IMG/VR virus record: IMGVR_UViG_3300033049_000066 | Span: 62,001-126,000 of that record | Length of the DNA stretch: 64,000 bases | Reading direction: 5' to 3' (one strand) | Shown: in pieces, positions 16,245 through 41,435 of the stretch | Layout of the letters: each line of letters opens with the position of its first letter | How positions within the stretch are numbered: the stretch's first letter is position 1 | Notes under the pieces: model-generated | Told to the model about the DNA's origin: nothing | Seen by the model: the letters and a program-made list of their open reading frames with translations, nothing else | Databases searched by the model: none | Made by a program: the position numbers and the translations under genes

Positions 16245-16380
16245 TGAATATCTCCTGTGTTGTTAATTTATTTAACAATAAAACCACCACCGCAGTATGA
16301 GCACTTAAATGATGCTTTTCTATGATAAATATAGATGGTTCCATTAAATAGCAACCGCACATGAAGTCATAAATAACATT

Positions 16381-21924: not shown

Positions 21925-22451
21925 TTGACAGCATTATTAAACATATTCGTGATCGACCGTATATGTCAGGAGTTAGTAGGGACAATGTTCGGGTGCGCTC
22001 AACGGCTGAAGTATTTACTAGAACAGATTTAGTTCTTGACTATATCAACTGGACTGATAAGAAATACCCCGATGCCTTTACAGATCCAAATAACAATTGG
22101 TGCGATAACTCAGCCGGCGATGGTCAATTATTGGGTGAGGTGCTAATCCGAAAAGTTGAACGAGCATTGGAGATAAGACAAATAACAAATTGCACAAAAG
22201 ACAGCATCGAAGGCTATGCAGCAATTTTTGAAAACGCTTTGCGTCATATATACGGTGTTGATAACCAACAATCTAATGTTGATTTATGTCGAGAGCGACT
22301 ACTATGTGGTCATGAAGAATTTAGGCACATTGTAGAAAATAATATAATCTGTGCCGACGCACTCGAATACGACTACAGCTTTGATGGGTCTTGGGAAAAG
22401 AAACAAGCCATGAATAAAAAGAAAGATGATCTATTTGATTTTGGTGACTAA
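21921..22451 (+). CDS. N6-adenine methyltransferase SAM-binding half
   Basis: TAEVFT, DNSAGDGQLL (motif I), IYGVD, NIICADAL; no NPPY motif. Confidence 0.75.
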   Translation: MIDSIIKHIRDRPYMSGVSRDNVRVRSTAEVFTRTDLVLDYINWTDKKYPDAFTDPNNNWCDNSAGDGQLLGEVLIRKVERALEIRQITNCTKDSIEGYAAIFENALRHIYGVDNQQSNVDLCRERLLCGHEEFRHIVENNIICADALEYDYSFDGSWEKKQAMNKKKDDLFDFGD

Positions 22452-24506: not shown

Positions 24507-25280
24507 ATGTCAAATCCGTATAGTACACTTGGACTAACCTCGTCTGCCACTAGTGATGAAGTAAAACGTGCTTATAGAAAGCTGGCGATGAAATTCCACC
24601 CGGACCGCAATGACGGAAAGGATGCCAAGTTCAAGGAGATCAAGTCAGCGTACGATCAGATACAAAAAGGCCCGAGCCAAGACCCCGACGCGTGGTCGAC
24701 ATTTCGCAAGGAAGGTGGTTTTGCTGGAGCAGCCGGCCGGAGTTCAGTTTTTGATGATTTCTTCAATAATCGCAGACCGAACTACAAACCATCTACTGTA
24801 AATTTGTCAGCGCAAATACCATTCGCAGACGCTATATGCGGTAATCCTCAATTTTTAAAAATAAATGTCCATGGTAAATCAAAAACTGTTAAGGTTGAAA
24901 TACCTGCTGGGTTAACTCATGGTGAGAAGATAAAATACGCAAAGCTAGTCGATGGCATTGATGTTATCATTTCCTTTATAGTTGAGCCAACTCCTATGTG
25001 GGAATTGGACAAGCTAGATTTAATTCAAACACCAGATATAAGTATTTGGGATTTAATAACAGGCGGGGAGTTAGACGTTTCGTTAATTAATGGTAAAGTA
25101 ATACGCCTAAAGATTCCGGCCGGAACTCAACCTAACACCGTAATGCGGGTACAAGGAAAAGGAGTGCAATCACGTGTAACTAAAGTATTATACGGCGACA
25201 TGCTAGTTAAACTAAATGCCACGATACCAAAGGACATTCCAGCTGATCTTTTAAATATGATTAGGAAGGTCAACAGCTAA
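24507..25280 (+). CDS. dnaJ: DnaJ/CbpA-like chaperone (no Zn finger)
   Basis: J-domain with HPD ([14 protein letters not shown]), C-terminal IPAGTQP...GKG...GD. Confidence 0.92.
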
Positions 25281-25672: not shown

Positions 25673-27931
25673 ATGCAAATCAATCCAGAAATCGAGCAGA
25701 TAACCGACTACGCAATTGCTCTCGCAAAACGGCAGCATCAGGAATATGTATTAGTTGAACATTTGCTGGTCGCATTAATAAGTTACGAACCATTTTACAA
25801 TTGTTTAAAAGGTTACGGTGTTAATATCGACGCAATGGTGAATGACATTGAGCTGTACCTGCATAATTTACCGGCAGCTCCGAGCACTGTCGAAAAGCCA
25901 AAACGAACTAACAGCATAGAGCGAGTGTTCAACCGTGCTGTAACGCAGGTTATATTTAGTGGTCGGCGCTTTGTTACTACAATTGATTTATTCTTGGCGA
26001 TCTCGTCTGAGGCAAGCAGCCACGCATCATATTTTATTTTAAAATATGGCGTTGATGACAAGGAGGCGATCGCATCGTACTGGAATGATAACTACAGCGA
26101 TATCGGTGGGAAGATGAGCGATACGCAATCAGACGAGGTGCTTGAAGAACATTGCACAAACGTATCGGCCAAGGCAGCAGCAGGTGAGCTCGAGCCGCTT
26201 ATTGGGCGAGAGGCCGAAGTGAAGGACGCGATAGAAATCCTCGCTAAGAAATTTAAGTCCAATGTGCTGATGGTCGGGGAGCCAGGTGTAGGCAAAACCG
26301 TCATCTTAGAAGGGCTCGCACAGAAAATCAACGCCGACGAAGTGCCGACGTTCATGAAGGGACACACCGTCTGGGAGCTCAACATCGGTGACATGCTCGC
26401 TGGCAGCAAGTACCGAGGAGAATTTGAAGAGAAATTTAAGAAAGTGATCAAGGCCTTGGAAGCGTCGGGCAAGGGTATACTTTTTATCGACGAAGCTCAC
26501 ACTATGAAGGGTGCTGGCAGCGGCGCAGGATCATCGTTGGATTTCGCGAACATGCTGAAGCCGGTGATCACACGCGGCAAGATCAAGGTCGTCGCCTGCA
26601 CCACCTGGGACGAATACTACGAATCCTTCGAGAAAGATAAGGCATTGATGCGCAGATTTTACAAACTAATTGTCGACGAACCAGATCACGACACCACAGT
26701 GAAGATTTTAACGGGCGTGGCGAAACGTCTGTCAGCATATCACAATGTGAAAATCGACCCGAGTGCTATCGCGTCAACCGTGGACTTGAGTACTCGCTAC
26801 ATTCACGACAGATTCAACCCAGACAAATCAATCGACATCTTAGACGCGGCCTGCGCTAAGGAACGTGCGAGTGACAACCACGACACGCTAATTAAAACTG
26901 AACATATCATTCAGCAACTAAGCAAAGTCACCGGCGTACCTACAGAACGTCTAAGCAATGAAAAAAGCAAGACACTATTGACACTGCGTGGCAATATCGA
27001 CAGCAAATTATTCGGCCAAGAAGATGCGGTGGAAGAAGTACTTAATAAAATTTACATCAACTTTGGTGGATTAGCCGAAGAAAATAAACCAGTCGCAAGC
27101 TTCTTGTTTCTTGGGCCAACCGGCACAGGTAAAACCGAGCTAGCTAAGCTAATCAGTGAAAACTTAGACATGGAACTATTACGTTACGATATGTCCGAGT
27201 ACATGGAAAAACATACAGTGGCATCACTTATTGGTGCGCCACCGGGTTATGTCGGCTACGAAGAGTCAGGTGGTGGTGGCAAGCTAATCTCAGATATTAG
27301 CAAACATCCATTCTCTGTACTGTTACTTGACGAAGTTGAGAAAGCTCACCCTGACGTGTTCAACGTGCTGCTGCAGGTCCTGGACGAAGGTAAGATTACT
27401 AGTCGCAGCGGAAAATCAGTGTCACTGCGAAATACAATCGTCATCATGACGTCAAATCTTGGCGCAGCTGACAATGAGAAAAATAACATTGGTTTCACAG
27501 ACCTGGCCCGCAGCGGCGAAGAAGATAAAGCAGTTAAAGAATTCTTTAAACCTGAGTTCCGCAACAGACTTGACGGTATTGCTAAGTTCAAGAAACTTGA
27601 AGATATAAATGTGAAGAAAATTGTTGTCAAGTTCATAAACGAACTAAAAGTCAGCTTGAAATCTAAGGGGATTGCATTCAACGCAACAGAGGCGGCCATC
27701 AATCATATTGCTGATACTGGTTACGATTCAGCACTTGGAGCACGGCCAATTAAACGACAGATCTCAGATGTGTTTAAACAGCCACTAAGTAAACGAATAT
27801 TATTTGAAGAATTAAGCAATTGCACAATTACCGCAGATTATGTCGACGGAGAAATTGTATTTACTGACACATGCGTTCCGGTAATCCCAGAGCTAAATCC
27901 CGAACCACATATTTTAACCCAAGATATTTAA
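25673..27931 (+). CDS. clpA: ClpA-type AAA+ chaperone/protease ATPase
   Basis: Clp N-domain, GEPGVGKT/FIDEAH, GPTGTGKT/LDEVEKAH, FKPEFRNRLD; 752 aa, no ClpB middle domain. Confidence 0.92.
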   Translation: MQINPEIEQITDYAIALAKRQHQEYVLVEHLLVALISYEPFYNCLKGYGVNIDAMVNDIELYLHNLPAAPSTVEKPKRTNSIERVFNRAVTQVIFSGRRFVTTIDLFLAISSEASSHASYFILKYGVDDKEAIASYWNDNYSDIGGKMSDTQSDEVLEEHCTNVSAKAAAGELEPLIGREAEVKDAIEILAKKFKSNVLMVGEPGVGKTVILEGLAQKINADEVPTFMKGHTVWELNIGDMLAGSKYRGEFEEKFKKVIKALEASGKGILFIDEAHTMKGAGSGAGSSLDFANMLKPVITRGKIKVVACTTWDEYYESFEKDKALMRRFYKLIVDEPDHDTTVKILTGVAKRLSAYHNVKIDPSAIASTVDLSTRYIHDRFNPDKSIDILDAACAKERASDNHDTLIKTEHIIQQLSKVTGVPTERLSNEKSKTLLTLRGNIDSKLFGQEDAVEEVLNKIYINFGGLAEENKPVASFLFLGPTGTGKTELAKLISENLDMELLRYDMSEYMEKHTVASLIGAPPGYVGYEESGGGGKLISDISKHPFSVLLLDEVEKAHPDVFNVLLQVLDEGKITSRSGKSVSLRNTIVIMTSNLGAADNEKNNIGFTDLARSGEEDKAVKEFFKPEFRNRLDGIAKFKKLEDINVKKIVVKFINELKVSLKSKGIAFNATEAAINHIADTGYDSALGARPIKRQISDVFKQPLSKRILFEELSNCTITADYVDGEIVFTDTCVPVIPELNPEPHILTQDI

Positions 27932-27938
27932 TTGAAGG

Positions 27939-27968
27939 TTGCTAGCGTCGCAGATTCGGCGCTAGCAA
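27939..27968 (+). terminator. intergenic stem-loop after clpA
   Basis: ttgctagcgtcg-cagatt-cggcgctagcaa inverted repeat; weak U-tract. Confidence 0.5.
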
Positions 27969-28007
27969 GTTACTCGATGTTTGATTTACAATAGCATAAA
28001 TAGTAAT

Positions 28008-28379
28008 ATGAAAACCTCATCAATTAATTTAATTCCGTACACCGCATTTGGTTCCGCCACAGGAAACTATGATCCGCTAGTCAACAGTGGAGATTTTAGC
28101 GGTGACCCCGGCAAGGCCGCAGCATATTATTCCAAGGACAAGAGCGTACAGACTGCCTCTTGGTACCTCATTGGATTCATCGGCGTCATCACCATCGAAG
28201 CTACACTTGAGAGCGATGGTACTACAGCAACATATTTTCCAATTCGTGTTATAGGCGATGGAGTAAATGCGTTAACTGAAAATGACTTCGAAAATTTAGA
28301 AGGTAATTATACTTGGCTTAGGGCTACTGTAACGCAGTTCACAGCTGGACAGATACAAAAAGTATCAATTGGGTACTAA
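28008..28379 (+). CDS. putative virion structural protein
   Basis: ATG after CATAAATA (27995); beta-rich, GNYTWLRA motif. Confidence 0.6.
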   Translation: MKTSSINLIPYTAFGSATGNYDPLVNSGDFSGDPGKAAAYYSKDKSVQTASWYLIGFIGVITIEATLESDGTTATYFPIRVIGDGVNALTENDFENLEGNYTWLRATVTQFTAGQIQKVSIGY

Positions 28380-28389
28380 AAGGTAATCT

Positions 28390-29046
28390 ATGAAAACAAT
28401 AGTCGTTTACGGTGGAAGATTTCAGCCACCGCATTTAGGACATAAGGGGTCGTATGATTGGCTTGTAAATGAATTCCCAAATGCTGATGTATACATGTCA
28501 TCGGCAGAAAAAGCCCCCGGTCCAAAAGATCCATTTATGTGGTCGGAGAAGAAACGTCTAGCAGTCGCAATGGGTGTTCCACCTAGCAAATTTATTAAAA
28601 TTAAAAATGCGTACGTTGAAGAATTGATTCGCAGTGTCATCCCTTACAATCCAAAAACTACGGTATTAATTATCGCACTAAGCCAGAAAGATGGTGATCG
28701 TTTAGTTAGCAAAAACGTTGACGATGAAGGATACGCAATTAAAAAGAATGGTGACCGCGCACCGATACAGTGGTTACCTAAGAACCCAGAGCCTGTAGTC
28801 AACGGCCACTTTTACGTCGTTGCAACCCCCACCGTCACTTTCAAGGTTGCCGGCAAAAACATCACCGGCGCAACAGAAATCCGTGATATGTATACAAACG
28901 GGGATGAGAAAACACGAGATCGCATTTTAAAAGATTTATACGGTGAGGTCAAGCCAGCGGTAAGAAAGCTATTTGATCGTAGACTTGGTGCGATACAAAC
29001 TGAAGATGTCCTTAGAGAATTTATAGAATTCGTTAACAAATTTTAA
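28390..29046 (+). CDS. HIGH-family (cytidylyltransferase-like) nucleotidyltransferase
   Basis: YGGRFQPPHLGH motif; GATEIR (SxTxIR-like). Confidence 0.85.
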   Translation: MKTIVVYGGRFQPPHLGHKGSYDWLVNEFPNADVYMSSAEKAPGPKDPFMWSEKKRLAVAMGVPPSKFIKIKNAYVEELIRSVIPYNPKTTVLIIALSQKDGDRLVSKNVDDEGYAIKKNGDRAPIQWLPKNPEPVVNGHFYVVATPTVTFKVAGKNITGATEIRDMYTNGDEKTRDRILKDLYGEVKPAVRKLFDRRLGAIQTEDVLREFIEFVNKF

Positions 29047-29079
29047 AAACATCAGAACTCAATGGCATAAATACTGCTA

Positions 29080-32000
29080 ATGAATATCACAGAGCTCGAC
29101 AATTATAAGCTTGCGAAAGCAATTGATTTTAACACTGATTTAAACCCACAGATTTTCGTCAACGACAAAATGCGGCCGGTAGTGCGTGAGAAATTGATGG
29201 AGATAGCAGATCATTTTCGTGAATTCTTAGGCGTACAAAATATTGCCTTAGTAGATATAGAAGTTAGCGGATCCAATGCTGCTTACAGCTACACTCCGCA
29301 TAGCGACATTGACTTACACCTAATCGTAGATTTTACGCAACTTCCAGACAGTGATGTTTACAGAGAGCTATTCGACGCGAAAAAATATCAATATAACAAT
29401 CACCACGATATAAAAATTAAAGGGTACGAAGTTGAATTGTACGTCCAAGACGCAGCACAAAAACATCATTCCCTCGGCAGCTACAGCGTTCTGAATGACA
29501 AGTGGAATAAAATTCCAACAAAGCAACGCGCAAATCTCGACGACGACGCCACACTTTTAAAATATGAAAAATTAAAGGACCTTGCCATCCGCGCCTTGGC
29601 AGCCGATGACAACGAGTACTTAAATAAAGTGCTTGACGTAGTGAAGAAATACAGACAGGCTGGGCTTGATCAGCACGGTGAGTTCGGCCCTGAGAATTTA
29701 GCATTTAAAATGCTTCGCACTGATGGCTACTTTGCTAAGCTATGGACGAAGAAACGCAATCACGTAGATACCGAGCTTAGCCTAGAAACCGCTGTAGAAG
29801 AGCCGGACACCTTAGCCCAAGAATTGATGGCAGAATTTGTCAGCGGCGTATCACCTCAACAAACAGAAAGTATGATCAAGCGCATGTTCAAAGCTCGCTC
29901 AGGTCTGTTTGAAGATTTTGATTACACCTACATTCAAGACAGTGCCGCCAAGCTAGTGACCTTTGAAGCATCGTACGCAGGCAACCTCGGTGCCATGGAA
30001 GTTATGCAATTTTATCGTGACGCCCCAACCGATCACGTGGACCTACTAACGAGACTTATTGCCGCTGACAAAACTAAAGAAGCATGGCAGCTTATACAAA
30101 AAGTAACCGGCACCCAGTTACAAGGACAAGAGTTCAACGAAAGCGAAGCTAAATTTATCGCTGGCATGCGGTCAACCTTTGGTGCTGCCCTAGATGACAC
30201 TAGCGATACAGCCATAATTGAAGCATGGGACGTATCTAACCAGACGCCGGTGCCATCACCAGGCTACAATAAAATTATCGCTATGAGCACGACAGTACTA
30301 GAAGACGGTACTAGATGTACCGATATGGGGCTTGTAGCAAATTTCCTGGTTGCTGAAGCTAGTAGGAATAATCCGAAGGTCTTAGAGTCAAACACAGAAG
30401 AGACAATCACTAATATCGTACAAGAATTATTTAATTCAATGTCCGGGGTGACTCCGGTAGTTGGCAATTCATACGCAATTTTACAAATAATCGCACTAGC
30501 CTCAGGAGAGTCGATAATATTAAATGGGTCACGGACTCCACTTACGATAACAGAAGTAAATCAAAAAGATACCTATGTTGAGTACGTGTTTAAGACACAT
30601 GACGGTATTGTGCGCAAATTCCCAGACGAGTTGCATCTTGGAGCTCGTGTTGACAAAACATTCCTCTTTGAAACACGTGAACAATTAGGATCGATGGAAT
30701 CATTTTTAAGACTTAAAATGTCAAACTGGGCCATTACTGATCGGTTCTTAACTGAGGTAAGTACTGGCATCTGCGAAGACCCCATGACATGGATCCAAGA
30801 CGACGACCAAGATTTTATTAACCCGGTGCCAATTATTACCGACACCGAAGTATTTAACTTCATGGATGAAATAGACAGAACAGCCTATGAGATGTTCCCT
30901 GAGAATAAAGGTTTATCAGGCTCGGCATACGGCATGGCAATGAAAAAAGCTCGGGCAAAAATAGGAACAGTTGAGCAAGTGCCGATGCAGCAAATTGTTT
31001 CAACAGAAAAATATTTAAAGACAAGTCAACTTGCCGCAATTTTAAATGGCAAAGCAAAATCATCAAGTGACTATCCTATATTATATAAGCAAGGTAACAC
31101 ATATATCGCAGGTGATGGCAACCACCGCATTGCGGCACAGTTTATTAAACAACAACCTACAATTAAAGCCTTGGTCCTAGACGGCGCAAAAATACTGGAT
31201 GAAAATTTCATCGTCAATGAACAAGACATCGACTTAGTGGAAGAGATCCGGGCAGAATTTGAAGTACATAAAAATATCAAAGAGAATTTCATTGTCAACG
31301 AACAAGGTCGCATTGTTAAAGGATCGAATACAACAGATGACGTTGGCGTAGACGAAATTAAAATCCAAGCTAAAAAGATGGGCTTCAACGTATCAATTGA
31401 TGGCGTACCTGAAATTCCAAAGAACGGTGTACCTAAGATAATTAATTATACTGCTAAGATAGAAAACGCACATGCATCCGCATTGCGAGAGTTTCTAAAT
31501 AGTAATCAGTCATTGCTTGAATCACAAGACGATTTTAAATCAGTAAGAGAATTTACAAATTCGTACAAAACTAGTCCAATTATCGGTGAGAAATATGTGT
31601 ACACATCATTGATGATTACTCCGGCGATGGGATTTATAAACCTTGCACATACCGAAGAGGCAGAGTTAATTAAAATCAAAGCTGGTTATGTTTATTTTCG
31701 ATTAGCTAGCGGCAAGATTGCACAATATCCAAAAAACGACTCCGATTTAAATTCATCACTACAGCAAATATTATTTTTTAAAACCCTGACCGAGTTTGAT
31801 CAGTTTAAGGCCGCACTTATTTTAAAATTCGGACAATGGCGTATAACCCACAAGTTACTTGAAGATGCAGAACCTAAAATATTCAAATCAGCCGCGGTAC
31901 GCGAGATGAAGTGGGAAGACTCTGCTCACATTGAGTACATGGATGATCGCCTTGCTTGGGTCGAATCACAAATTGTCGAAGGCGTTACGTTGTTTGATTC

Positions 32001-34197
32001 AAACAGCAACGCTAATACTGATTATTTTTTAAATATCAATAGTGACGCTCCAGTAATAAACAAAAAATTTATACTAGCCTTCCAAGCTCTTGTTAATAAT
32101 AGAATAATTATTAGCGAAGTACATACCGGTAGATTAATCGACTTTAATGACACCGAGTATAAAATTAAACTTGACAGTGGCAAAATTCTAACGTACCCGG
32201 ATTGTAGCAGCTCTAAAAAGATGCTTACTAAATCATTCTTGTTTGACTCCAATGACAAATATAATAAGTTCCGTACAATAATCCAACTTAAATTTAAAAA
32301 GACACTGCCGCAGATTAGTCTCGCAGCGAGTAGCATACAGCAAGACAACTTAACTGAATCGTTTCTTACAGAACTCAACATGGCCCCGGGTAATTTACAG
32401 AAGGCCGTAAATAAAATACTAAGTTCCGCTGATCCGCACGTTGGTGTTGAGTTTGAAGTAATTATGCCCGCCGACGCTGAGATGAATCCGGAAATCAACC
32501 TCCGCACAACACGGCAAGATATCTTAGATTTCTTTACGTACGACGACGAAGAATCATTTGAGAACTTTAATGATGTTTACCAAGAATGGCTACAAGAACA
32601 AGAGTCGGCGTGGTCCGAACAAAAAACAAATGAAATACTAAATGATCCGACTGAGGAGTACGACGACAAGCGTGAGTTCATGGTTGACTATACCCTGAGC
32701 GACAATGCCACCTCGCAGCTAAAAAGTATTTACAAAAAGTTAAAAATTAAAGACGACTTAGAAATTACAGATGAAATTGCGGAGTCTGTGCTTGACATGG
32801 CAGAACTCGCATATAAAGATTACGGATCCGCAGATAACTGGCCGACATCGGACGGTATGAGTCCGTACGTATTATTGTATCATGAAATATTCGTTGTTGA
32901 TAAAGAAGACGCTACAGAAAAGTTTAAAGAGATGGCCACTGAGGAATTTTATTCTACCGAAATGCTAGTAGACGAAGATGAGTACTCCATTGGTGCGTGG
33001 CTTCAGTCACTTCAGATATCAAGTATGGGTGACCTATATAGAGAGTTTGATTACGACTTAACGTGGACAGGTGGTACTAACGTTAGTGCCAATTTTGATG
33101 AAGAAATCGCCTATCAAATAGCAGATGAGCTAGGAAATCTTATTGGTGAGGACGTAACAGTTGCTGGTGAAGATAGCGACGATAGCGACAACGCGCCGGA
33201 CACGAGCGTGAACTGGGTTATTACAAATGACTCGTCAATTCGACCTAATAACGATGATGATTCTGCTCTTGAAATTATTACGCCAGTAATGGATTATTCT
33301 ACCGGGATAAAAACACTCAATAAGGTCTTTGATTTTCTAAGTGAGAAAAATGCTTACGCAAATGACTCTACAGGCCTGCACATTAATGTAAGTCTAGGAA
33401 ATATAGATCACACAAAATTAAATTACACTAAATTAATCGTTATGCTCGGCGATTCACATATATTAAAACAGTACAATAGAGAATTCAACGAATACGCTGT
33501 AGACGCATTGACTAATTTAAGTACGATGCTAGATGCAAAGCAAGGATACGATCAAGATAAGAAAGCTAAAGCCGTGTCCTTTGCAAATATGATGGGCAAA
33601 ATGAAAAGTGATTTTAACAATGCTGTAGCAAGCTCATTTGACAAAATTGATTTCGGCAAGTACAATTCAATCGGGCTCAAAGATAATTATATTGAATTTA
33701 GATCCGGCGGCGGCGCTAATTATCTTGACGACTTTGGAGATATTGTCGGAATGATTAACCGGTTCGTTGTAGCGTACGCAGTAGCAGCTGACCCAGACGC
33801 ATATAAGAATGAGTACGGTAAGAAATTATATAAACTTGCTACAAATGTCGGTCTAAGTCCGGCCTCACCTACAGCAATGCAATTATTTGCGAAATTTAGT
33901 TCCGGCATGATGACAAAGGAAGAGCTTATCCGGCAGGTTAAGATGTCAAAGACCATCTCAGACGAGCCGGTGGACACTGGTGATCGTTTAAGAACTGCGA
34001 AGAGCACCGCGACTGAAGCATTCATAGAAATTTCTGACAAGTGGGATCTATCAGCCGTCGAGACAGACAGACTGTGGAACAACGCGATTGCTATCGAGCT
34101 CGAGAGACTAGCAGATTTAAGAAATTATCTCAGGCCACCACGAGCTGCAAAAGCAGCATACACCAATTTAATGAACGATAAAGGATACTATGAATGA
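29080..34197 (+). CDS. multidomain polyprotein: Pol-beta NTase + ParB-like + three copies of an unknown domain + amidoligase
   Basis: GS...SDIDLH...ELYVQD (from aa 64); GDGNHR (aa 678); GVEFE, LEIITP, STGLHINVS, IEFRSGGG (aa 1120-1545). Confidence 0.8.
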   Translation: MNITELDNYKLAKAIDFNTDLNPQIFVNDKMRPVVREKLMEIADHFREFLGVQNIALVDIEVSGSNAAYSYTPHSDIDLHLIVDFTQLPDSDVYRELFDAKKYQYNNHHDIKIKGYEVELYVQDAAQKHHSLGSYSVLNDKWNKIPTKQRANLDDDATLLKYEKLKDLAIRALAADDNEYLNKVLDVVKKYRQAGLDQHGEFGPENLAFKMLRTDGYFAKLWTKKRNHVDTELSLETAVEEPDTLAQELMAEFVSGVSPQQTESMIKRMFKARSGLFEDFDYTYIQDSAAKLVTFEASYAGNLGAMEVMQFYRDAPTDHVDLLTRLIAADKTKEAWQLIQKVTGTQLQGQEFNESEAKFIAGMRSTFGAALDDTSDTAIIEAWDVSNQTPVPSPGYNKIIAMSTTVLEDGTRCTDMGLVANFLVAEASRNNPKVLESNTEETITNIVQELFNSMSGVTPVVGNSYAILQIIALASGESIILNGSRTPLTITEVNQKDTYVEYVFKTHDGIVRKFPDELHLGARVDKTFLFETREQLGSMESFLRLKMSNWAITDRFLTEVSTGICEDPMTWIQDDDQDFINPVPIITDTEVFNFMDEIDRTAYEMFPENKGLSGSAYGMAMKKARAKIGTVEQVPMQQIVSTEKYLKTSQLAAILNGKAKSSSDYPILYKQGNTYIAGDGNHRIAAQFIKQQPTIKALVLDGAKILDENFIVNEQDIDLVEEIRAEFEVHKNIKENFIVNEQGRIVKGSNTTDDVGVDEIKIQAKKMGFNVSIDGVPEIPKNGVPKIINYTAKIENAHASALREFLNSNQSLLESQDDFKSVREFTNSYKTSPIIGEKYVYTSLMITPAMGFINLAHTEEAELIKIKAGYVYFRLASGKIAQYPKNDSDLNSSLQQILFFKTLTEFDQFKAALILKFGQWRITHKLLEDAEPKIFKSAAVREMKWEDSAHIEYMDDRLAWVESQIVEGVTLFDSNSNANTDYFLNINSDAPVINKKFILAFQALVNNRIIISEVHTGRLIDFNDTEYKIKLDSGKILTYPDCSSSKKMLTKSFLFDSNDKYNKFRTIIQLKFKKTLPQISLAASSIQQDNLTESFLTELNMAPGNLQKAVNKILSSADPHVGVEFEVIMPADAEMNPEINLRTTRQDILDFFTYDDEESFENFNDVYQEWLQEQESAWSEQKTNEILNDPTEEYDDKREFMVDYTLSDNATSQLKSIYKKLKIKDDLEITDEIAESVLDMAELAYKDYGSADNWPTSDGMSPYVLLYHEIFVVDKEDATEKFKEMATEEFYSTEMLVDEDEYSIGAWLQSLQISSMGDLYREFDYDLTWTGGTNVSANFDEEIAYQIADELGNLIGEDVTVAGEDSDDSDNAPDTSVNWVITNDSSIRPNNDDDSALEIITPVMDYSTGIKTLNKVFDFLSEKNAYANDSTGLHINVSLGNIDHTKLNYTKLIVMLGDSHILKQYNREFNEYAVDALTNLSTMLDAKQGYDQDKKAKAVSFANMMGKMKSDFNNAVASSFDKIDFGKYNSIGLKDNYIEFRSGGGANYLDDFGDIVGMINRFVVAYAVAADPDAYKNEYGKKLYKLATNVGLSPASPTAMQLFAKFSSGMMTKEELIRQVKMSKTISDEPVDTGDRLRTAKSTATEAFIEISDKWDLSAVETDRLWNNAIAIELERLADLRNYLRPPRAAKAAYTNLMNDKGYYE

Positions 34198-34790
34198 AAC
34201 CGCAAGAATTTATAACAGAAGCCCGAAGCGATAGTATTATATTGATTGACTTTCAGCCAGCGTATCAAAGCGAGGATTTCGGCTATGACGATGCCATCGA
34301 CCAGGCTGTTAACTACATTAATAAAAAACAGCCATCCGTGACTGCTTTTTATAACGGACAGGATGTAGGCATTGAGGATACTCCCTCAGAGGTTCTTTGG
34401 CATTACATGGAACATGGACTAAACGAAGATCTCGGACATTTATTTACGTTCAAAGAGAAGTCATACGCTTGGTTAAGATCATGGATAGACGAAGGGGTTG
34501 ACGAAGCATTGATTATTAAAGTTATTCGGTACTTGGTTATGAATGACATGAATGATAGTCGAAGCATAGAAGATGAAGACTGGTTAAAACTAGTTGGTGA
34601 AGATTTTGACTTCTACGAAGATAGAGAGATGGGAATTTTTATACCTGAGATTAATATTGCTACATTACAAACACTAAACAAATCACTACTTGGTGGAGGT
34701 GGTCAACATGAATGCCTTAAGGAAATGCAGGTGCTAATGAATGCGTTTAATATTAAATATAAATTAGTACAAGAATGGATTTACGGTTAA
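34194..34790 (+). CDS. cysteine-hydrolase (isochorismatase/nicotinamidase fold)-like protein with capsid-targeting-like leader
   Basis: IILIDFQP and GGGQHECL; leader MKPQEFITE. Confidence 0.55.
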   Translation: MKPQEFITEARSDSIILIDFQPAYQSEDFGYDDAIDQAVNYINKKQPSVTAFYNGQDVGIEDTPSEVLWHYMEHGLNEDLGHLFTFKEKSYAWLRSWIDEGVDEALIIKVIRYLVMNDMNDSRSIEDEDWLKLVGEDFDFYEDREMGIFIPEINIATLQTLNKSLLGGGGQHECLKEMQVLMNAFNIKYKLVQEWIYG

Positions 34791-34869
34791 CATCCTGGGC
34801 GTAACGCACCCGCTGATTTAAAAGCGAAAACAACGACTTACCATAAATAGTATTAAATGGAAACTCATT

Positions 34870-35040
34870 ATGAAAGTAAATGAAATTATAAAAGAAACAA
34901 CAACCGCTGGTGGTATTGCTACAGTAGTGGGTGGCATCGCGCCAGCAATCACTCGTAATGCCTCAATTTACGGTAATGATAAGCCCAAAAAGAAGAAAAA
35001 GAAATCCGGCAAATATGCCAACAGCCCAGGTAACGAATAA
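34870..35040 (+). CDS. small basic late protein, possible prohead core (56 aa, not in the ORF track)
   Basis: MKVNEIIKETTTAGGIATVV...KPKKKKKK; CATAAATA at 34842; stop overlaps next ATG. Confidence 0.65.
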   Translation: MKVNEIIKETTTAGGIATVVGGIAPAITRNASIYGNDKPKKKKKKSGKYANSPGNE

Positions 35041-36011
35041 TGAATGACATGAACAGTATATTAAAGAATTTTAACAGCGCTGGCTCGGACCAGTCCAAAG
35101 AAGGCACACCGAGTGAGCAAGGAGCAATGCAATCATTGCTTGAAGGACTCGATTCAGCACAGCAAAGTGTAAATCAAATGCCAGGGACACATACGATGGC
35201 AAAGAGTACAGACACAGCGCATCCAGCAGAAAAATTCCTAGTAGGCGGCGAGCACGACAAAGAAACTAATTTAGCAGAAGTAACTCCAGATGAAGTAGCA
35301 GCGATATGGAAAGAAGTATTTCCGCATAGCTCAGTACAAATTAACAAATTACAAAACGGCGCAGCTTTTAAATTTCGACTAGCAGCTGGCCCAAGTGAAG
35401 TATCCGGTGGTATAATGGACAATGATCCATTAAATTACATGGTAATGTTACGTGGTAAAGAATGGAAGGAAAATTTAACGTCACTAACTGTTGCTCCGGA
35501 AGAAGGTTCGCATATGGCTTTTGGAAGTGTTAAGCTTCGTAAAAAGACAGCTAAAAATATTACTACTGATTTAATCCGCAACCGTTTTAACCAAATAAAA
35601 GACTTCATTACTGCTAATGCGTCAAAGTTGCACCAAATTGATTTTGACATCAATGAGAAATTAGGAACTACAGTTACAGAATCAGATACATACGAAGATA
35701 CTATTGCAAAACGCAACCCAGTCAACAATGTCCATAAAAAACAATCGTTTAAAGATATTTTCCGATCAATGGAAGAAACAGAAGAAGACCTAGCAACCCG
35801 ATTTAAGAAAGAGTTGCATGACGAACTAGATGAAACAGCGAAAGACCCCGAACTTAGAACTACTGGAAGTATGAGCGGGATGCTAGATGATATAAAACGT
35901 CTTATTCGACAAGGCAAGACAGTCCAGGTAACTGCCAGGGGCTTGCCAACTGACAGATATAGACTCGGTGCAATTGTATCTTATTCATTGTCACATGAAG
36001 AAACTAAATAA
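35040..36011 (+). CDS. hypothetical late protein (possible internal head protein)
   Basis: 323 aa with LLE, LAE, VTE and LDE motifs. Confidence 0.65.
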   Translation: MNDMNSILKNFNSAGSDQSKEGTPSEQGAMQSLLEGLDSAQQSVNQMPGTHTMAKSTDTAHPAEKFLVGGEHDKETNLAEVTPDEVAAIWKEVFPHSSVQINKLQNGAAFKFRLAAGPSEVSGGIMDNDPLNYMVMLRGKEWKENLTSLTVAPEEGSHMAFGSVKLRKKTAKNITTDLIRNRFNQIKDFITANASKLHQIDFDINEKLGTTVTESDTYEDTIAKRNPVNNVHKKQSFKDIFRSMEETEEDLATRFKKELHDELDETAKDPELRTTGSMSGMLDDIKRLIRQGKTVQVTARGLPTDRYRLGAIVSYSLSHEETK

Positions 36012-36030
36012 CTAAACAAAGGAAAGTAAA

Positions 36031-37635
36031 ATGAAATTACACGAAATGTTCAACGGTGACGTCAAAGAAAACAAAGAAGCCGACGTTAAGCCAACGTACC
36101 TACAAGATGAAATCCTCGAACGTTTAAAGGCGTCAGGTGGTAGCGTGTACACAGGTAACGCAAGATTGGTAAAAGACGGCGTTACAGCGATCCTAGCAAT
36201 CAACGGTCAACGCAGATTCGCAATCTTCCCAGATGGCACGTACAAAGCAAGTAAAAAATTCATTGACTTTCAACGTGATGGTTGGGAATTAGAAATTGCT
36301 AACTTTGAAAGCGTAGAAGAAGCCAAAGGAAAAAGTCCAAAGTCTGATATTCGTGTAGACAATGCCGGTAACAAGAAATGGTACAAAGATGGTGAATTAC
36401 ACAGAGAAGACGGACCAGCAATTGAGTTCGCGGATGGTGACCGGTGGTGGTACAAGAACGGTAAACAGCACCGAGATGATGGGCCAGCTGTTGAACAGGT
36501 AAATTCCACAAAGGGCTGGTACATAAATGGTAAGTTACACAGAGAAGATGGCCCAGCAATTGAATACGAAAATGGTGATCAATATTGGTACATAAATGGC
36601 AAATTACATAGAGAAGATGGCCCGGCTGTTGAACGTGCGGATGGCAGTAAAGAGTGGTACTTAAATGGCGTAAAACAAGAACCTAACGTTTCAGAAGAAA
36701 GAGAAGTGCGCACTGGCGTAGAAGAAGCCAAAGGAAAAAGTCCAAAGTCTGATATTCGTGTAGACAAAGATGGTAACAAAAGATGGTACGTAAATGGCGT
36801 ATTACATCGAGAAGATGGCCCTGCTATTGAACTCGCAGTTGGCTCCAAATTTTGGTTCATAAATGGCAAAAGACACAGAGAAGATGGCCCTGCTATTGAA
36901 CTCGCGAATGGCGACCGCCATTGGTACAAAAACGGCAAAAGACACAGAGATGATGGGCCGGCTATTGAGTACGCGGAAGGTGACCGCCATTGGTACATAA
37001 ATGGTGAAAGACACAAAGAAGATGGGCCAGCTGCAGAACAAGCAAATGGCTCCAAATTTTGGTTCGTACATGGCAAAAAACACAGAGAAGATGGCCCTGC
37101 TATTGAACTCGCAGATGGTGAAAAACAGTGGTTCATAAATGACAAAAAACACAGAGAAGATGGGCCAGCCGTTATACAAAAAGCCGGCTCCAAATTTTGG
37201 TACATAAATGGCGTAAAACAAGAACGTAACGTCTCTGAAGAAATAGTTCCTTACACTAAAAATGGTGATACCGATCAAGGCGAATATATTGATGATGAAA
37301 CTGGTCAAATATATGACCAAAATGAAATTGAGACAGTACACGGCAAGAATCGAGAAAAACAACACCACGCTATTAATAACTCAAATCGATCCGAAGATGA
37401 TTACGTGGCCGAGCCTGAAGTTACTCCGAAAAATCCCTTAGCCGTTAGCATGTTTGGCGATATCGCAGCAGGTGGTGGTGATCCAATTGATCATTTAATG
37501 ACCTCACATAACATGACGATGGATCAGGTTGATGCACTAGCACGTGAGCAAGGGTATACTGATGCTTATGAATGGGCAGAAAGTTTTATTGAAATGGAAT
37601 CAATTCTTAGGAACGCAGGTATTCAAAAATCATGA
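36031..37635 (+). CDS. HREDGPA-repeat (MORN-like) protein
   Basis: ten 23-aa WxxNGxxHREDGPA repeats in two blocks; leader MKLHEMF. Confidence 0.8.
   Translation: MKLHEMFNGDVKENKEADVKPTYLQDEILERLKASGGSVYTGNARLVKDGVTAILAINGQRRFAIFPDGTYKASKKFIDFQRDGWELEIANFESVEEAKGKSPKSDIRVDNAGNKKWYKDGELHREDGPAIEFADGDRWWYKNGKQHRDDGPAVEQVNSTKGWYINGKLHREDGPAIEYENGDQYWYINGKLHREDGPAVERADGSKEWYLNGVKQEPNVSEEREVRTGVEEAKGKSPKSDIRVDKDGNKRWYVNGVLHREDGPAIELAVGSKFWFINGKRHREDGPAIELANGDRHWYKNGKRHRDDGPAIEYAEGDRHWYINGERHKEDGPAAEQANGSKFWFVHGKKHREDGPAIELADGEKQWFINDKKHREDGPAVIQKAGSKFWYINGVKQERNVSEEIVPYTKNGDTDQGEYIDDETGQIYDQNEIETVHGKNREKQHHAINNSNRSEDDYVAEPEVTPKNPLAVSMFGDIAAGGGDPIDHLMTSHNMTMDQVDALAREQGYTDAYEWAESFIEMESILRNAGIQKS
36311..37242 (+). 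repeat. duplicated repeat cassettes made of 69-bp coding repeats (4 + 6 units)
   Basis: identical 52 bp at 36311-36362 and 36716-36767; both blocks end in NGVKQExNVSEE. Confidence 0.9.
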
Positions 37636-38186
37636 AAATTTCTGAACTAGAAAAAAATGATGCAGTAACAAAAGATAAAACACTTGAAGCATCGCTCGCA
37701 CTATGCGAAGGTATTATATCAATGTTAACCGGACGTATATCCAAAGCAACACGGAACTTTTTAAAAACACAAGGTGGTAATATTGACCGAGCAATTAGAG
37801 TTGCAAGAGGTATGCTAAGTGGCATCGGTCGCAACAGTAATTGGGATAATATTGTACTTGAGCTGTCTGGCTTGAAGACAGGCAGATTGCACGAAGCAGA
37901 ATACGAAGGTGGCATTGATTTTGAGGCACAACCAGACTACGCAAATGTTAAGGGCGTGAATCTCGACAATCCAAGATCCCACATTGATTCAGTAGCAGCA
38001 AATAAAAAGCAAGCAGCAAAATTAAATAAGGCGTGGGTAAGACTCGTTGGAAATTTAAGCAAGCTGAACGCAATGGATCCTAAGTCTGCACAGACGTTGA
38101 AGATGAATTTACGTAGCTTAGCACATACCGCAAAAGAAAATAATTTCAACTTAGTTCCATCCCCGGAACAAGTATTTGGCGACTAA
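37632..38186 (+). CDS. hypothetical late protein (possible internal head protein)
   Basis: MKISELE leader, internal LHEAE. Confidence 0.65.
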   Translation: MKISELEKNDAVTKDKTLEASLALCEGIISMLTGRISKATRNFLKTQGGNIDRAIRVARGMLSGIGRNSNWDNIVLELSGLKTGRLHEAEYEGGIDFEAQPDYANVKGVNLDNPRSHIDSVAANKKQAAKLNKAWVRLVGNLSKLNAMDPKSAQTLKMNLRSLAHTAKENNFNLVPSPEQVFGD

Positions 38187-38204
38187 TTAATTTCTCCGAA
38201 CTAC

Positions 38205-38235
38205 AAAAATAGGCCCAATTAGGGTCTATTTTTTT
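38205..38235 (+). terminator. rho-independent terminator (possibly bidirectional)
   Basis: aaaaataggccc-aatta-gggtctattttttt, at the end of the late block. Confidence 0.8.
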
Positions 38236-38245
38236 GCCAAAGGCA

Positions 38246-38274
38246 TTGACCTTTAGCGTGTACTATTGTATAAT
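38246..38274 (+). promoter_or_regulatory. sigma70-like early promoter
   Basis: TTGACC-N17-TATAAT. Confidence 0.8.
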
Positions 38275-38563: not shown

Positions 38564-38681
38564 TGTCGGTACCAGCCGAAGGCAAGCTGAAAGGTGGCAA
38601 TGGCGCTGTAAAGAAACAAAAAACTTCACAGCGGCCAACGCAGCCACCTGCTCCGGGTAAATCAAAAGGTGCTACACTATG
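38561..38681 (+). promoter_or_regulatory. structured RNA leader of the DNA polymerase gene
   Basis: nested stems TAGTGT-GGTACC/GGTGCT-ACACTA, AGGTGGC/GCCACCT, GCTGT/ACAGC; outer stem covers the RBS and start. Confidence 0.6.
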
Positions 38682-41435
38682 AGCTTTGTAGATGCGATAT
38701 ACGTTAAAGATAAAGATCTCGTACGAGTCGTAGAGCGTGTAAATGGCAAGCGAATCTTTGTTGACTATCCCGCGGAGTACACATTTTATTATGAGGATCC
38801 TCGAGGCAAGTACAAAACTGTCTATGATAAAAATGTCAGCAAATTTACAACGAAATCAGCGAACGAATATCAGAAAGAAAAGAGAATGCACAGCGGCACA
38901 ACCTTGTACGAAAGCGATTTCTTGCCCGTGGCGCGCTGTCTTGAGCGCAATTACAGTGGTGCTGAGATTCCTGATTTACAAACCGCATTTTTCGACATTG
39001 AGGTTGACTTTGATAAAGTCAAGGGATTTAGTCCGACCTCGGACCCTTTCAACAAAGTTACAGCAATTTCAACGTACTTGAACTGGAATAATACTCGCCT
39101 CACGCAAGTGGTCGCACCACTACACATGTCACCGCAAGAAGCTCAAGAAATATGTTCGCACTTCACAAACGTCGTTCTGTACACTGATGAAAAAGAGATG
39201 CTCAAAGATTTCCTTGATATTATCGACGATGCTGATGTGCTTAGCGGTTGGAACAGTGAAGGGTACGATATTCCGTACATGGTAAATCGCATTACACGTG
39301 AGCTATCTAAGAATGACACCCGGCGGTTCTGCTTGTGGGATAAATTTCCAAAGAAACGTATCTTTGAACGATTTGGTGCTGAGCAAATGACGTATGATTT
39401 AATAGGCCGAGTTCATATGGACTATATGCAATTATACAGAAAATACACTTACATCGAAATGCCGTCGTACAGCTTGGATTCAATTGCTGAGCACGAGCTA
39501 GGCGAAACTAAAGTTGCGTACGAAGGCTCGCTTGACAAGTTGTACAACAAGGATTTCAGAAAGTTTATTGAGTACAATATCCAAGATACAATGCTATTAC
39601 ACAAGTTAGATTTGAAATTAAAATTTATTGATTTGGCGAATTCCGTGGCACATGAAAACACAGTTCTTATCCCGAGGACCATGGGCGCGGTTGCTGTTAC
39701 AGAACAAGCGATTATCAACGAGGCGCACATGCAGGGATTCATTGTGTCGGACAAGGTGCGACACGCTGATGATGATAACACGCAGGCAGCAGGTGCGTAC
39801 GTAGCATATCCTAAGAAAGGTTTACACAAGTGGGTGGGGTCGGTTGACATCAACAGTCTGTACCCGTCAGCAATTCAAGCTTGTAACATGGCGCCTGAGA
39901 CAATTGTCGGGCAGCTACGACCGATAGAAACCGACAAGTACATTGAAGAAAAGATGGCAGATAAGCTTGTAACAAATGCTAAGGGCAAGACCAGGTCCAA
40001 GAAGGGAACCTCGTTTGCTATGGCGTGGGAAGGACTATTTGGATCGCTTGAATACACTGCGGTAATGGAACGACGAGAGGATGTGCAGGTCACCATTGAC
40101 TGGGAACCCAAGACCTCCGGTGATTTGTCTACGTTTGCTAAATTAGCCGGGGACTCGACATTGTCAGCCAAGGACGCCAACGACCTGATCTTCAACAGCG
40201 GGCAACCGTGGGTAGTATCTGCTAACGGCACGATCTTCTCACTTGAAACTGCTGGCATCATTCCCGGCCTTTTGAAACGCTGGTATTCGGAGAGACAGGA
40301 AATGCAGGCAAAGCTAAAACAAGCTATTGCTGCTGGGAATAAAGACGATATTGCGTACTGGGACAAGAGGCAGCTCGTGAAAAAAATTAACTTGAACTCC
40401 CTGTATGGTGCGATTTTAAATCAACATTGTAGATTCTTTGACAAACGCATTGGTCAGTCTACGACCCTTACAGGACGAGCCATTGCGCAGCACATGGATG
40501 CTCATCTCAACCAATGCCTCACCGGCGAATACGACCATGCCGGACAATGTATTATATATGGTGACACAGACTCAGCCTATTTTACAGCATGGCCTGTAGT
40601 AGAAAAATCCGTCAAAGATGGTACGCAGGAATGGGATAGAAGTATTGCGATCGCGTTATACGATAGCTTAGCAGATGAGTGTAATACAAGCTTTCCGCTC
40701 TTTATGAGCAGGGCATTTAACTGCCCGACAGAGTACGGAAAGTTAATTAAATGTGGCCGAGAAGTTGTAGCATCCAACGGATTATTTATTACAAAGAAAC
40801 GCTATGCGTTGATGGTAATTGATAATGAAGGAAAGCAACTTGATGTAGACGGCAAGCCAGGGAAAGTCAAAGCGATGGGGCTTGACTTAAAACGTTCAGA
40901 CACCATGCCGATAGTACAAGAATTCTTAAAAACTATTCTTGATTCAACGCTAAACGAGCTCGGCAAAGAAAAAGTAATTGAACAGATTCTTGCGTTCAAG
41001 ACAGAGTTCAAGGCGCTACCAAGCTGGGAGAAAGGTTCTCCCAAGCGCATTAATAATTTAACAATGTACACAGCAAAGGAGCTAAATGGCAGAGCAACGG
41101 GCGAAAAAGCCACCCTGCCCGGGCATGTACGTGCTGGATTTAATTATAATAATCTTCGTGACCTGCACAACGATAATTTTACCATGGCGCTAACTGATGG
41201 CGACAAAGCAATTATATGTAAATTAAAAGACAATGCGATGAATATAACTAGCGTAGCAAGACCAACAGATGAAAAGCAGATACCTCAATGGTTTAAAGAT
41301 TTACCATTTGACGATGAGTTAATGCAAGCAATGGCAATAGATCAAAAAGTTGATAACTTGCTAGGTGTGCTGGACTGGGATCTTGCTGCTCATACAGACA
41401 CAACGAGCACATTCGGAAAACTATTTGAATTTTAG
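38679..41435 (+). CDS. family B DNA polymerase (gp43-like)
   Basis: FDIEV, GWNSEGYD exonuclease motifs; DINSLYPS, KINLNSLYG, YGDTDS, KKRY. Confidence 0.97.
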   Translation: MSFVDAIYVKDKDLVRVVERVNGKRIFVDYPAEYTFYYEDPRGKYKTVYDKNVSKFTTKSANEYQKEKRMHSGTTLYESDFLPVARCLERNYSGAEIPDLQTAFFDIEVDFDKVKGFSPTSDPFNKVTAISTYLNWNNTRLTQVVAPLHMSPQEAQEICSHFTNVVLYTDEKEMLKDFLDIIDDADVLSGWNSEGYDIPYMVNRITRELSKNDTRRFCLWDKFPKKRIFERFGAEQMTYDLIGRVHMDYMQLYRKYTYIEMPSYSLDSIAEHELGETKVAYEGSLDKLYNKDFRKFIEYNIQDTMLLHKLDLKLKFIDLANSVAHENTVLIPRTMGAVAVTEQAIINEAHMQGFIVSDKVRHADDDNTQAAGAYVAYPKKGLHKWVGSVDINSLYPSAIQACNMAPETIVGQLRPIETDKYIEEKMADKLVTNAKGKTRSKKGTSFAMAWEGLFGSLEYTAVMERREDVQVTIDWEPKTSGDLSTFAKLAGDSTLSAKDANDLIFNSGQPWVVSANGTIFSLETAGIIPGLLKRWYSERQEMQAKLKQAIAAGNKDDIAYWDKRQLVKKINLNSLYGAILNQHCRFFDKRIGQSTTLTGRAIAQHMDAHLNQCLTGEYDHAGQCIIYGDTDSAYFTAWPVVEKSVKDGTQEWDRSIAIALYDSLADECNTSFPLFMSRAFNCPTEYGKLIKCGREVVASNGLFITKKRYALMVIDNEGKQLDVDGKPGKVKAMGLDLKRSDTMPIVQEFLKTILDSTLNELGKEKVIEQILAFKTEFKALPSWEKGSPKRINNLTMYTAKELNGRATGEKATLPGHVRAGFNYNNLRDLHNDNFTMALTDGDKAIICKLKDNAMNITSVARPTDEKQIPQWFKDLPFDDELMQAMAIDQKVDNLLGVLDWDLAAHTDTTSTFGKLFEF

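Follow-up and report, generated by a model that had tools for sequence, protein, structure and literature searches.

The first ten residues of the phage T4 internal protein IPIII suffice for packaging; positions 4 and 7 matter for targeting, positions 8 and 10 for processing, and the prohead protease gp21 cuts after L/I-x-E (PMC9026906). With Asp as the final residue of the tag, targeting is retained and processing is blocked (PMC9026906). In the T4 record (NC_000866), IPII and IPIII open with MKTYQEFIAE-A, Alt (682 aa), a packaged ADP-ribosyltransferase whose N-terminal propeptide is short, with MELITELFDE, and gp24 with MAKINELLRE. Alt, a large cargo, is trimmed at its ends only (PMC9026906). 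In the phiKZ-like giants (phiKZ, 201phi2-1, and SPN3US), a diverged gp21-like protease trims many of the proteins inside the head after a Glu, and propeptides have a part in targeting (PMC9026906). For a further group, the polyvalent proteins, packaging and injection have been predicted (Iyer, Burroughs, Anand, de Souza and Aravind 2017, PMC5512222). Here, we analyzed a block of genes at positions 27995-38233 of a 64,000-nt stretch of DNA (the window) from an uncultured seawater phage, in which five proteins open with short leaders resembling the T4 capsid-targeting sequence. Taken as a whole, the block is on balance probably a head-cargo cassette: late, bounded by hairpins, hypervariable, and belonging to a marine jumbo T4-like phage. 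The cassette is of the T4 internal-protein/Alt and polyvalent kinds, in an unstudied marine jumbo lineage.

The window corresponds to positions 62001-126000 of the 293,278-bp IMG/VR record IMGVR_UViG_3300033049_000066, which is about 83% complete and whose sequence was found in two seawater metagenome DNA runs. The genome has 414 called proteins, and its proteome comprises 88,872 residues. Positions are given in the window unless marked as genome positions, and all features of the block lie on the + strand. The family-B DNA polymerase encoded at 38679-41435 has 42-46% identity to those of Sinorhizobium phage Phosso and the GAP32/CBB-type jumbo phages; the phage is a distant marine jumbo relative of T4. 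A megablast search of the block against cultured phages found no match at the DNA level, and tblastn searches against cultured phages with the 198-aa protein or with the first 33 residues of the 1705-aa protein, both described below, gave none either.

Leaders of Two Classes

A previous sequence-only reading of the window had proposed that the genes of the block share an N-terminal leader. The gene starts and leaders that it listed are as written: MNITELD at 29080 (1705 aa), MKPQEFITE at 34194 (198 aa), MKVNEIIKE at 34870 (56 aa), MKLHEMF at 36031 (534 aa), and MKISELE at 37632 (184 aa). The leader is shared by these five genes, but not by those at 28390 (218 aa, MKTIVVYGG) and 35040 (323 aa, MNDMNSIL). 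All five leaders terminate in the gp21 motif [LI]xE, and they fall into two classes. Class I, of the form M-[KR]-x-x-E-[FI]-[IMV]-x-E, opens the 198-aa and 56-aa proteins; class II, a 5-residue tag of the Alt type with the form M-[KRN]-[LI]-x-E-[LMF], opens the 1705-, 534-, and 184-aa proteins (MNITEL, MKLHEM, and MKISEL). The likeness to the T4 capsid-targeting sequence, which had also been pointed out, is borne out by comparison of MKTYQEFIAE-A(R) in IPII and IPIII with MKPQEFITE-AR in the 198-aa protein.

For class I, each open ATG of either strand was tested against a strict pattern, M[KR]x(2-3)E[FILM][ILMVFA]xE. Of the 5,555 open ATGs of the 293-kb genome, 10 matched, and all ten were on the coding strand at real starts of open reading frames (ORFs). 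Eight are at called N-termini, compared with 0.05 expected when residues 2-12 of the 414 called proteins were shuffled. At internal Met residues the pattern was found once in 1,779, and this single Met is the true start of a 112-aa gene in the head module. Codons vary among the ten leaders while the peptide is constant, and the residue that follows the leader is small (G, A, T, or V) in eight of them. The tagged genes are scattered over the genome and are unlinked to the ClpA-like gene that precedes the block; all the other tagged proteins belong to no known family.

The 198-aa protein has 83 metagenomic homologues, 42 of which were aligned, the most distant at about 31% identity. All 42 have the terminal Glu of the leader, while the leader itself ranges in length from MKLVE-A to MKVNEILTE-A. 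In an AlphaFold2 (AF2) model of the protein, with a predicted local distance difference test score (pLDDT) of 88, the chain is disordered over residues 1-6 and enters its first strand at residue 14. Residue 1 of the best fold relative in AFDB (template modelling (TM) scores 0.78/0.87) pairs with phage residue 17. The class I leader thus looks like an addition to the fold, because it is disordered in the model and absent from the best AFDB relative. A back-translated pattern of the 9-residue tag had five and two matches in the two closest related genomes, where a control pattern had none; the 10-residue T4 form had three matches in T4 (ipII, ipIII, and gene 61.1) and no others. The leaders are almost certainly a real, selected feature. 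By analogy with T4, those of class I are likely to be capsid-targeting propeptides of the T4 type, removed by a gp21-type protease.

The resemblance to the T4 internal proteins includes the tag itself (M-K-x-x-(x)-E-F-I-x-E plus a small residue, with F, I, and E in register), a gp21-family protease in the genome, motifs of the late-promoter type, diverse and fast-changing cargo, and small basic members, here the 56-aa protein. The differences are that the tag has 9 residues instead of 10, that R is allowed at its position 2, that at least 10 tagged genes are scattered over 293 kb, and that no cargo is homologous to the T4 internal proteins; moreover, genes alone were read here.

Three observations concern N-termini elsewhere. 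At genome positions 130679-132057 (4679-6057 of contig L010), adjacent genes for a 139-aa and a 320-aa protein share their first 27 nt, which encode MRAQEFIKE; this suggests a duplication of the tag or recombination at it. In T4, gene 61.1 (NC_000866 positions 18966-19130, corresponding to 3967-4131 of L021; 54 aa, hypothetical) opens with MKTFKEFIKE, which is similar to the capsid-targeting sequence, and lies outside the annotated internal-protein genes. Three paralogues at genome positions 22670, 23616, and 287231 open with MNEINQLK(K/S)LMEA and form a separate N-terminal family unrelated to the leaders.

The class II pattern M[KRN][LI]xE[LMF] occurs four times genome-wide, against 0.135 expected, and three of the four occurrences are in the block. 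Among relatives of the 1705-aa protein, 110 of 120 open with M[ND][IL]xEL, and the x ahead of the Glu is unconstrained. The 184-aa protein has homologues that open with MKLFELY, MKIFELF, MKLFELF, or MRIFELE, and genes syntenic to the 534-aa gene in related genomes open with MRLFELF and MKLFQLF. Alt and the 1705-aa protein are alike in being large enzymes, made late in the case of Alt and by prediction here, with I-T-E-L after the start (MELITEL in Alt, MNITEL here); the start of gp24, MAKINELLRE, is comparable to the leader of the 56-aa protein, MKVNEIIKE. In contrast to Alt, the 1705-aa protein is 2.5 times larger, is multidomain, and has no ADP-ribosyltransferase (ART) domain, although some of its relatives have one, and its cleavage is only predicted. 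That the class II leaders, too, are T4-type capsid-targeting propeptides removed by a gp21-type protease is suggested by this analogy, and we hold it to be about an even call, tending slightly to the doubtful side.

The sequence-only reading had counted the gene opening with MKTTEI at 22453 among those with the leader. This start belongs to neither class: three residues ahead of its Glu there is no [LI], and a second Glu and a late motif are likewise absent. The gene is preceded by a 1,175-aa ORF (18397-21924) and an overlapping 176-aa ORF (21921-22451), neither of which had a match in NCBIfam, the one library searched.

Prohead Protease and Head Module

The reading had named the prohead protease gene as something to be looked for, and a gp21-type gene is present outside the window, at genome positions 247032-247664. 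Its product matches PF03420 (E = 4.2e-24, above the cut-off) and phrog_207 (E = 1.6e-55) and has 34% identity to T4 gp21; the catalytic His and Ser motifs, GE(I/L)xHP and GVSSRG, are aligned and conserved. The gene is part of a T4-type head module (on contig L009) in the order portal (phrog_213), 79-aa gene, 112-aa gene, acidic 253-aa virion protein, gp21-type protease, homing-endonuclease-like insert, 365-aa scaffold-like protein, and major capsid protein (phrog_138). The 112-aa gene, which carries the strict leader MKSTEFITE-W, sits between the portal and protease genes, in the place of the T4 prohead-core genes 67 and 68. The insert between the protease and scaffold-like genes is a homing-endonuclease-like ORF (phrog_314) at genome positions 247664-248260 (L009 7664-8260). 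The phiKZ-like phages differ in that they use S/A-x-E sites and long propeptides, and their cargo is not homologous; the head genes of the present phage are T4-like.

If the system works as in T4, the leader would direct the protein to the prohead's scaffolding core, the gp21-type protease would then remove the leader by cutting after the Glu of [LI]xE, and the cargo would remain in the head and be ejected with the DNA. We infer packaging, cleavage, ejection, and a role in host takeover or counter-defence by this analogy. The proposed role follows from the domain types found in the family of the 1705-aa protein and from the consideration that a host-directed enzyme made late would be useful only if carried to the next cell.

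The Block as a Predicted Transcription Unit

The block opens with CATAAATA, a motif resembling a late promoter, has two further copies inside, and is flanked by hairpins at both ends. The copies are at 27995-28002 (5 nt before the ATG at 28008), 29066-29073 (6 nt before the ATG at 29080), and 34842-34849 (20 nt before the ATG at 34870). The upstream hairpin (27932-27977) follows the ClpA-like gene and has a minimum free energy (MFE) of -21.9 kcal/mol (z = -3.6 against shuffles). The downstream hairpin (38205-38233) is followed by a U tract, as in an intrinsic terminator, and has an MFE of -17.7 kcal/mol (z = -4.0; 0 of 200 shuffles were as good). Beyond it, a sigma-70-type promoter, TTGACC-17-TATAAT (38246-38274; 11 of 12 consensus positions), opens the next unit, which is of early type and contains an 87-aa gene and the DNA polymerase gene.

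In the sequence-only reading, the genes were said to follow late motifs. The canonical motif TATAAATA shows no enrichment in the window (2 matches, 6.3 expected) and was dropped for this reason; NATAAATA was used in its place. NATAAATA is found 76 times on the + strand and 35 times on the - strand; of the 76, 42 have an ORF start no more than 40 nt downstream. Among the genes preceded by the motif are the portal gene and others that look structural, and leaders in the broad sense co-occur with it (odds ratio 7.8, p = 1e-4). Within the block, a motif of this type (CATAAATA) precedes the genes at 28008, 29080, and 34870, so that the claim holds for these three; the remaining genes abut or overlap their upstream neighbour. 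From the behaviour of the motif, we predict that the block is a late-type transcription unit. A PHROG scan of ten neighbouring genes in the window revealed no late sigma factor.

The spacing of NATAAATA has two modes. Over the whole genome, 56 genes have the motif within 60 nt; in 16 of them its distance from the ATG is exactly 5 nt and in 4 exactly 6 nt, 20 genes together, and the second mode is at 18-25 nt. Examples of the short spacing in the window are at 27995-28010, 29066-29082, 14509-14524, and 16368-16383. If transcription starts as at T4 late promoters, the mRNAs of these genes would be leaderless.

Conserved Order and Exchanged Cargo in Related Contigs

We compared the window with three related contigs (L002, L003, and L015). 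The gene order is kept in all four: DnaJ, ClpA-like, 123-aa gene, cytidylyltransferase, giant protein, 198-aa gene, variable genes, 87-aa gene, and polymerase. The giant protein, 1,705 aa long in the window, has 527, 1,434, and 1,115 aa in the others. Its residues 1-235 are kept in all, the stretch to about residue 355 is also found in L002 and L003, and the middle is exchanged; the C-terminal amidoligase module is kept in L003 and L015 and absent from the 527-aa protein of L002. The small genes come and go, with starts such as MKSTEFITE, MRATEFITE, MKATEFLIE, MRASDFLIE, MKSHEFISE, MRLFELF, and MKLFEFQ. Judged from these sequences, the cassette appears to follow the pattern of the T-even internal-protein locus, in which the tag is constant and the cargo changes.

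The two genes upstream of the cassette, both kept in the related contigs, encode a DnaJ-type protein with a J domain and HPD motif (24507-25280) and a ClpA-like protein with two AAA+ domains (25673-27931; TIGR02639, E = 1.5e-231).

The 1705-aa Protein and Its Family

The largest gene of the block (29080-34197) encodes the 1705-aa protein with the class II leader MNITE|L. A minimal nucleotidyltransferase (NTase) domain of the Pol-beta type occupies residues 13-235 (29116-29784; phrog_36119, E = 1.9e-37), and its G-S...D-x-D motif is invariant in an alignment with phage homologues. It is followed by a helical module (residues 236-357) and by three repeat domains. Domain A (residues 440-559; 30397-30756) is beta-rich with a helix, is modelled by AF2 with a pLDDT of about 90, and ends in WAITDRFLTE; domain B (residues 815-928; 31522-31863), delimited in the AF2 model, ends in WRITHKLLE. 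The two are homologous, with E = 8e-6 in a direct BLASTP comparison; a self-BLAST of the whole protein had missed the internal repeats. Domain C (residues 996-1071; 32065-32292), likewise from the AF2 model, resembles A and B in the order of secondary-structure elements and by reading only. Between A and B, a segment containing DGNHR (residues 625-705; 30952-31194) matches phrog_17560 (E = 4.6e-5), a ParB/Srx-like lead only; its Atlas feature matches include ParB_N clusters, again as leads only, its AF2 confidence is low, and it has no Pfam match.

Toward the C-terminus, within a module at residues 1090-1705 whose limits were taken from homology, residues 1348-1458 (33121-33453) match Amidoligase_2 (PF12224; E = 2.4e-9, 37.9 bits, cut-off 22), a match that spans only positions 20-140 of the 245-position profile. 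The AF2 model of residues 236-1110 had a mean pLDDT of only 57, and Foldseek searches with it against PDB and BFVD returned nothing usable (query-normalised TM at most 0.11). No ART family matched the 1705-aa protein, so it is not placed in the T4 Alt family; it may act like Alt in delivery without being a member. At 31195-31320, the sequence [LI]xE-NFIVNEQ is duplicated, with the copies 27 residues apart (residues 706-715 and 733-742).

The family of this protein comprises at least 180 proteins of 1,000-2,234 aa, on contigs of up to 357 kb. The frame consists of an N-terminal NTase and, usually, a C-terminal amidoligase, with exchanged inserts. The inserts include ART-PolyVal (PF18760), ADP-ribosyl exotoxin-like, ParBc, M48 and U49 peptidase, LysM/SLT, GH19, lysozyme-like, and deaminase domains; the profiles matched in relatives are PF18760, PF03496, PF02195, PF01435, PF10463, PF01464, PF00182, and PF00383. 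From its domain mix and domain swapping, as read from sequence, we classify the family as polyvalent proteins. It shares with those described (PMC5512222) the many unrelated domains per polypeptide, the Pol-beta NTase, the swapping of domains (ART-PolyVal, ParB, metallopeptidase, and lysozyme-like), and a delivery from the capsid that is predicted in both cases. In contrast, the fixed frame of NTase and Amidoligase_2 is not described there, and the word "amidoligase" is absent from that paper. The present family also lacks a linkage to MuF or portal, and the loading that we propose uses a T4-type leader and a gp21-type protease instead of an in-built peptidase.

A stand-alone homologue of the NTase, annotated as an aminoglycoside nucleotidyltransferase, is found in the T4-like cyanophage Synechococcus phage DSL-LC02 (L006 1501-2253). 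Its gene lies a short way upstream of the one for the DNA polymerase, a neighbourhood like that of the window.

Internal [LI]xE Sites

The sequence-only reading had further proposed that (L/I/V)xE motifs separate the domains and that the proteins are cut into modules at them. Neither part of this proposal gained clear support. The motif [LI]xE occurs 1.07 times per 100 residues genome-wide, and its density in seven block proteins is as composition predicts (z = -1.6 to +1.3). In residues 236-1110 of the 1705-aa protein, 12 of 18 [LI]xE motifs lie in low-confidence, linker-like segments, where 47% would be expected (p = 0.08); other Glu residues lie there in 22 of 47 cases, and the difference between the two has p = 0.18 in a Fisher test. 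The intervals around homology breakpoints, which make up 11.7% of the protein, contain 7 of its 24 [LI]xE motifs (p = 0.017), but these intervals were drawn post hoc, and we do not count the result as support. The motifs FLTE559 and KLLE928 coincide exactly with the C-terminal edges of domains A and B, within the repeat itself. The placement at domain borders is only suggestive, and the density is that of chance.

N-terminal trimming is what we would expect of the tagged proteins; cutting between domains is possible but unsupported. That the prohead protease cuts the 1705-aa protein, of about 190 kDa, at LTE559, IKE735, LRE804, LLE928, and LTE1093/1098 into several injected effectors appears decidedly unlikely. 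Were this true, the protein would be a capsid-processed polyprotein in a tailed phage, and the family of at least 180 members a large reservoir of injected anti-defence modules.

Other Proteins of the Cassette

The kinds of cargo that the sequence-only reading had listed were recovered in the form of an NTase, an amidoligase, a repeat protein, and, as a candidate, a protein resembling cysteine hydrolases. The cysteine-hydrolase-like one is the 198-aa alpha/beta protein (34194-34790; leader MKPQEFITE|A at 34194-34220). Residues E9, D19 (in VDFQ), K89, and C174 are invariant in its 42 aligned homologues. Its best PDB fold match is the cysteine hydrolase 8rkz (probability 1.0, TM only 0.44). It has no Pfam match, and a PDB search with the family profile found nothing below E = 0.4. 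On the modelled fold, we regard it as a candidate for a distant isochorismatase-like cysteine hydrolase with an Asp-Lys-Cys triad.

The repeat protein is the 534-aa product of the gene at 36031-37635 (class II leader MKLHE|M), which has two arrays of MORN-like repeats of about 23 aa. It matches DUF6745 at 27.1 bits, which is borderline against the cut-off of 27; MORN_2 was not matched by hidden Markov model search. Its Atlas neighbours, which are leads only, are viral DUF6745 and MORN_2/YwqK clusters with scores of 0.78-0.84. At 36300-36800, VEEAKGKSPKSDIRVD is found before each of the two repeat arrays.

The 56-aa protein (34870-35040; class I leader MKVNEIIKE|T) has a Gly/Ala-rich stretch and a lysine-rich tail. 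Its homologue in L015 opens with MKSHEFISE-TTTAGGIATVV, and the same tail module is found behind a larger insert in L003. The 184-aa protein (37632-38186; class II leader MKISE|L) and the 323-aa protein (35040-36011) belong to no known family. The latter has no N-terminal leader; it has LLE|G at residues 33-36 (LLEGLD, 35136-35153), invariant in the four aligned homologues. The sequence LLEGLD occurs only twice in the proteome, once here and once near the N-terminus of the major capsid protein (residues 17-22; genome positions 249439-249456; L009 9439-9456), and T4 gp23 carries PLLEGEG at the place that matches the LLEGLD of the capsid protein. In the 323-aa protein LLEGLD may mark a longer propeptide, a post hoc observation from sequence.

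The first two genes of the late-type unit have no leader. The first (28008-28379) encodes a conserved 123-aa protein that opens with MKTSSINL, matches phrog_13657, and has homologues in L002, L003, and L015. The second (28390-29046) encodes a 218-aa protein of the cytidylyltransferase family (PF01467 at 22.3 bits, cut-off 21; TIGR00125 at 29.3, cut-off 27.7). It has an HxGH motif, and its N-terminus, which is like that of NMN adenylyltransferases, runs directly into the first strand.

Alternative Explanations

Several results weigh against the cassette as head cargo. Three of its eight proteins have no N-terminal leader, and it is located among replication genes and not among head genes. The exact tag patterns, in either form, are missing from GAP32 and Phosso, whose polymerases make them the closest relatives in culture. 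Searches for T4 gp55 in the genome (BLAST and phmmer) gave no credible match, and "late" consequently depends on the behaviour of the motif alone. Only DNA runs from seawater carry the sequence; RNA runs were not found. For class II, the pattern was defined post hoc, after the data had been seen, the motif is at a fixed offset from the NTase core in the family of the 1705-aa protein, and stand-alone NTases open alike (MNLQEF in a cyanophage, MNLKTL in a Maribacter phage that is not T4-like). From the fixed offset and the similar starts of stand-alone NTases, it follows that the class II motif may belong to the NTase fold and not be a tag.

The most serious rival builds on these last points. 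In it, the class I leaders alone are capsid tags, the class II N-termini are conserved first helices, and the giant protein is made late but remains cytoplasmic and unpackaged, where it could be, for example, a late modifier of DNA, virion proteins, or host targets. In favour of this, 110 of 120 relatives have MN[IL]xEL at a constant distance from the LNP motif of the NTase core, and the start is roughly kept in stand-alone NTases, one of them from a phage that is not T4-like; the class II pattern is also short and post hoc, and about 190 kDa would be much for a packaged protein. However, the [LI], the Glu, and the following Leu are kept while the residue before the Glu varies, as predicted for an [LI]xE site, and the 682-aa enzyme Alt, which is packaged, opens with MELITEL. 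Unrelated syntenic genes of the four relatives carry M[KR][LI]FEL, the 1705-aa gene has its own late-type motif, and relatives contain ART-PolyVal and further domains characteristic of polyvalent proteins that are injected. We consider this rival unlikely, though worth keeping in mind. Quite improbable in our judgement is a tag for something other than the prohead, either the phage ClpA-like unfoldase with DnaJ or membrane targeting or secretion. The DnaJ and ClpA-like genes do directly precede the cassette, here and in the relatives, but the tagged genes are scattered and not tied to the ClpA-like gene, and one of them is inside the head-morphogenesis cluster; the leaders are hydrophilic, unlike signal peptides, and nearly match the experimentally defined capsid-targeting sequence of T4. 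It would be more surprising still if the leaders were alike by chance or because A-rich codons behind the ATG favour translation. Starts with MK are common, [LI]xE is frequent at about 1.07 per 100 residues genome-wide, and MKTTEI at 22453 is most simply explained in this manner. For class I, chance is already contradicted: 8-10 strict leaders were found against 0.05 expected and essentially never at an internal Met, the peptide is constant across varied codons, the Glu is invariant in 42 homologues, and the control pattern had no matches in related genomes.

Implications for Giant Marine Phages

If the tag works as in T4, nine residues would suffice to list the injected proteins across an uncultured clade of giant marine phages. 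There would be at least 10 such proteins per genome, with a function that is nearly always unassigned. Since injected proteins act before phage genes are expressed, they would be prime candidates for anti-restriction, anti-defence, and host takeover. As a practical use, the tag could be tried as a packaging handle in display and delivery systems of the T4 type. The T4 targeting and processing system would reach into a lineage in which the polymerase shares just 42-46% identity with those of the nearest cultured relatives. It would also be linked to polyvalent proteins, which would give a concrete loading mechanism for at least 180 giant proteins with the NTase...amidoligase frame.

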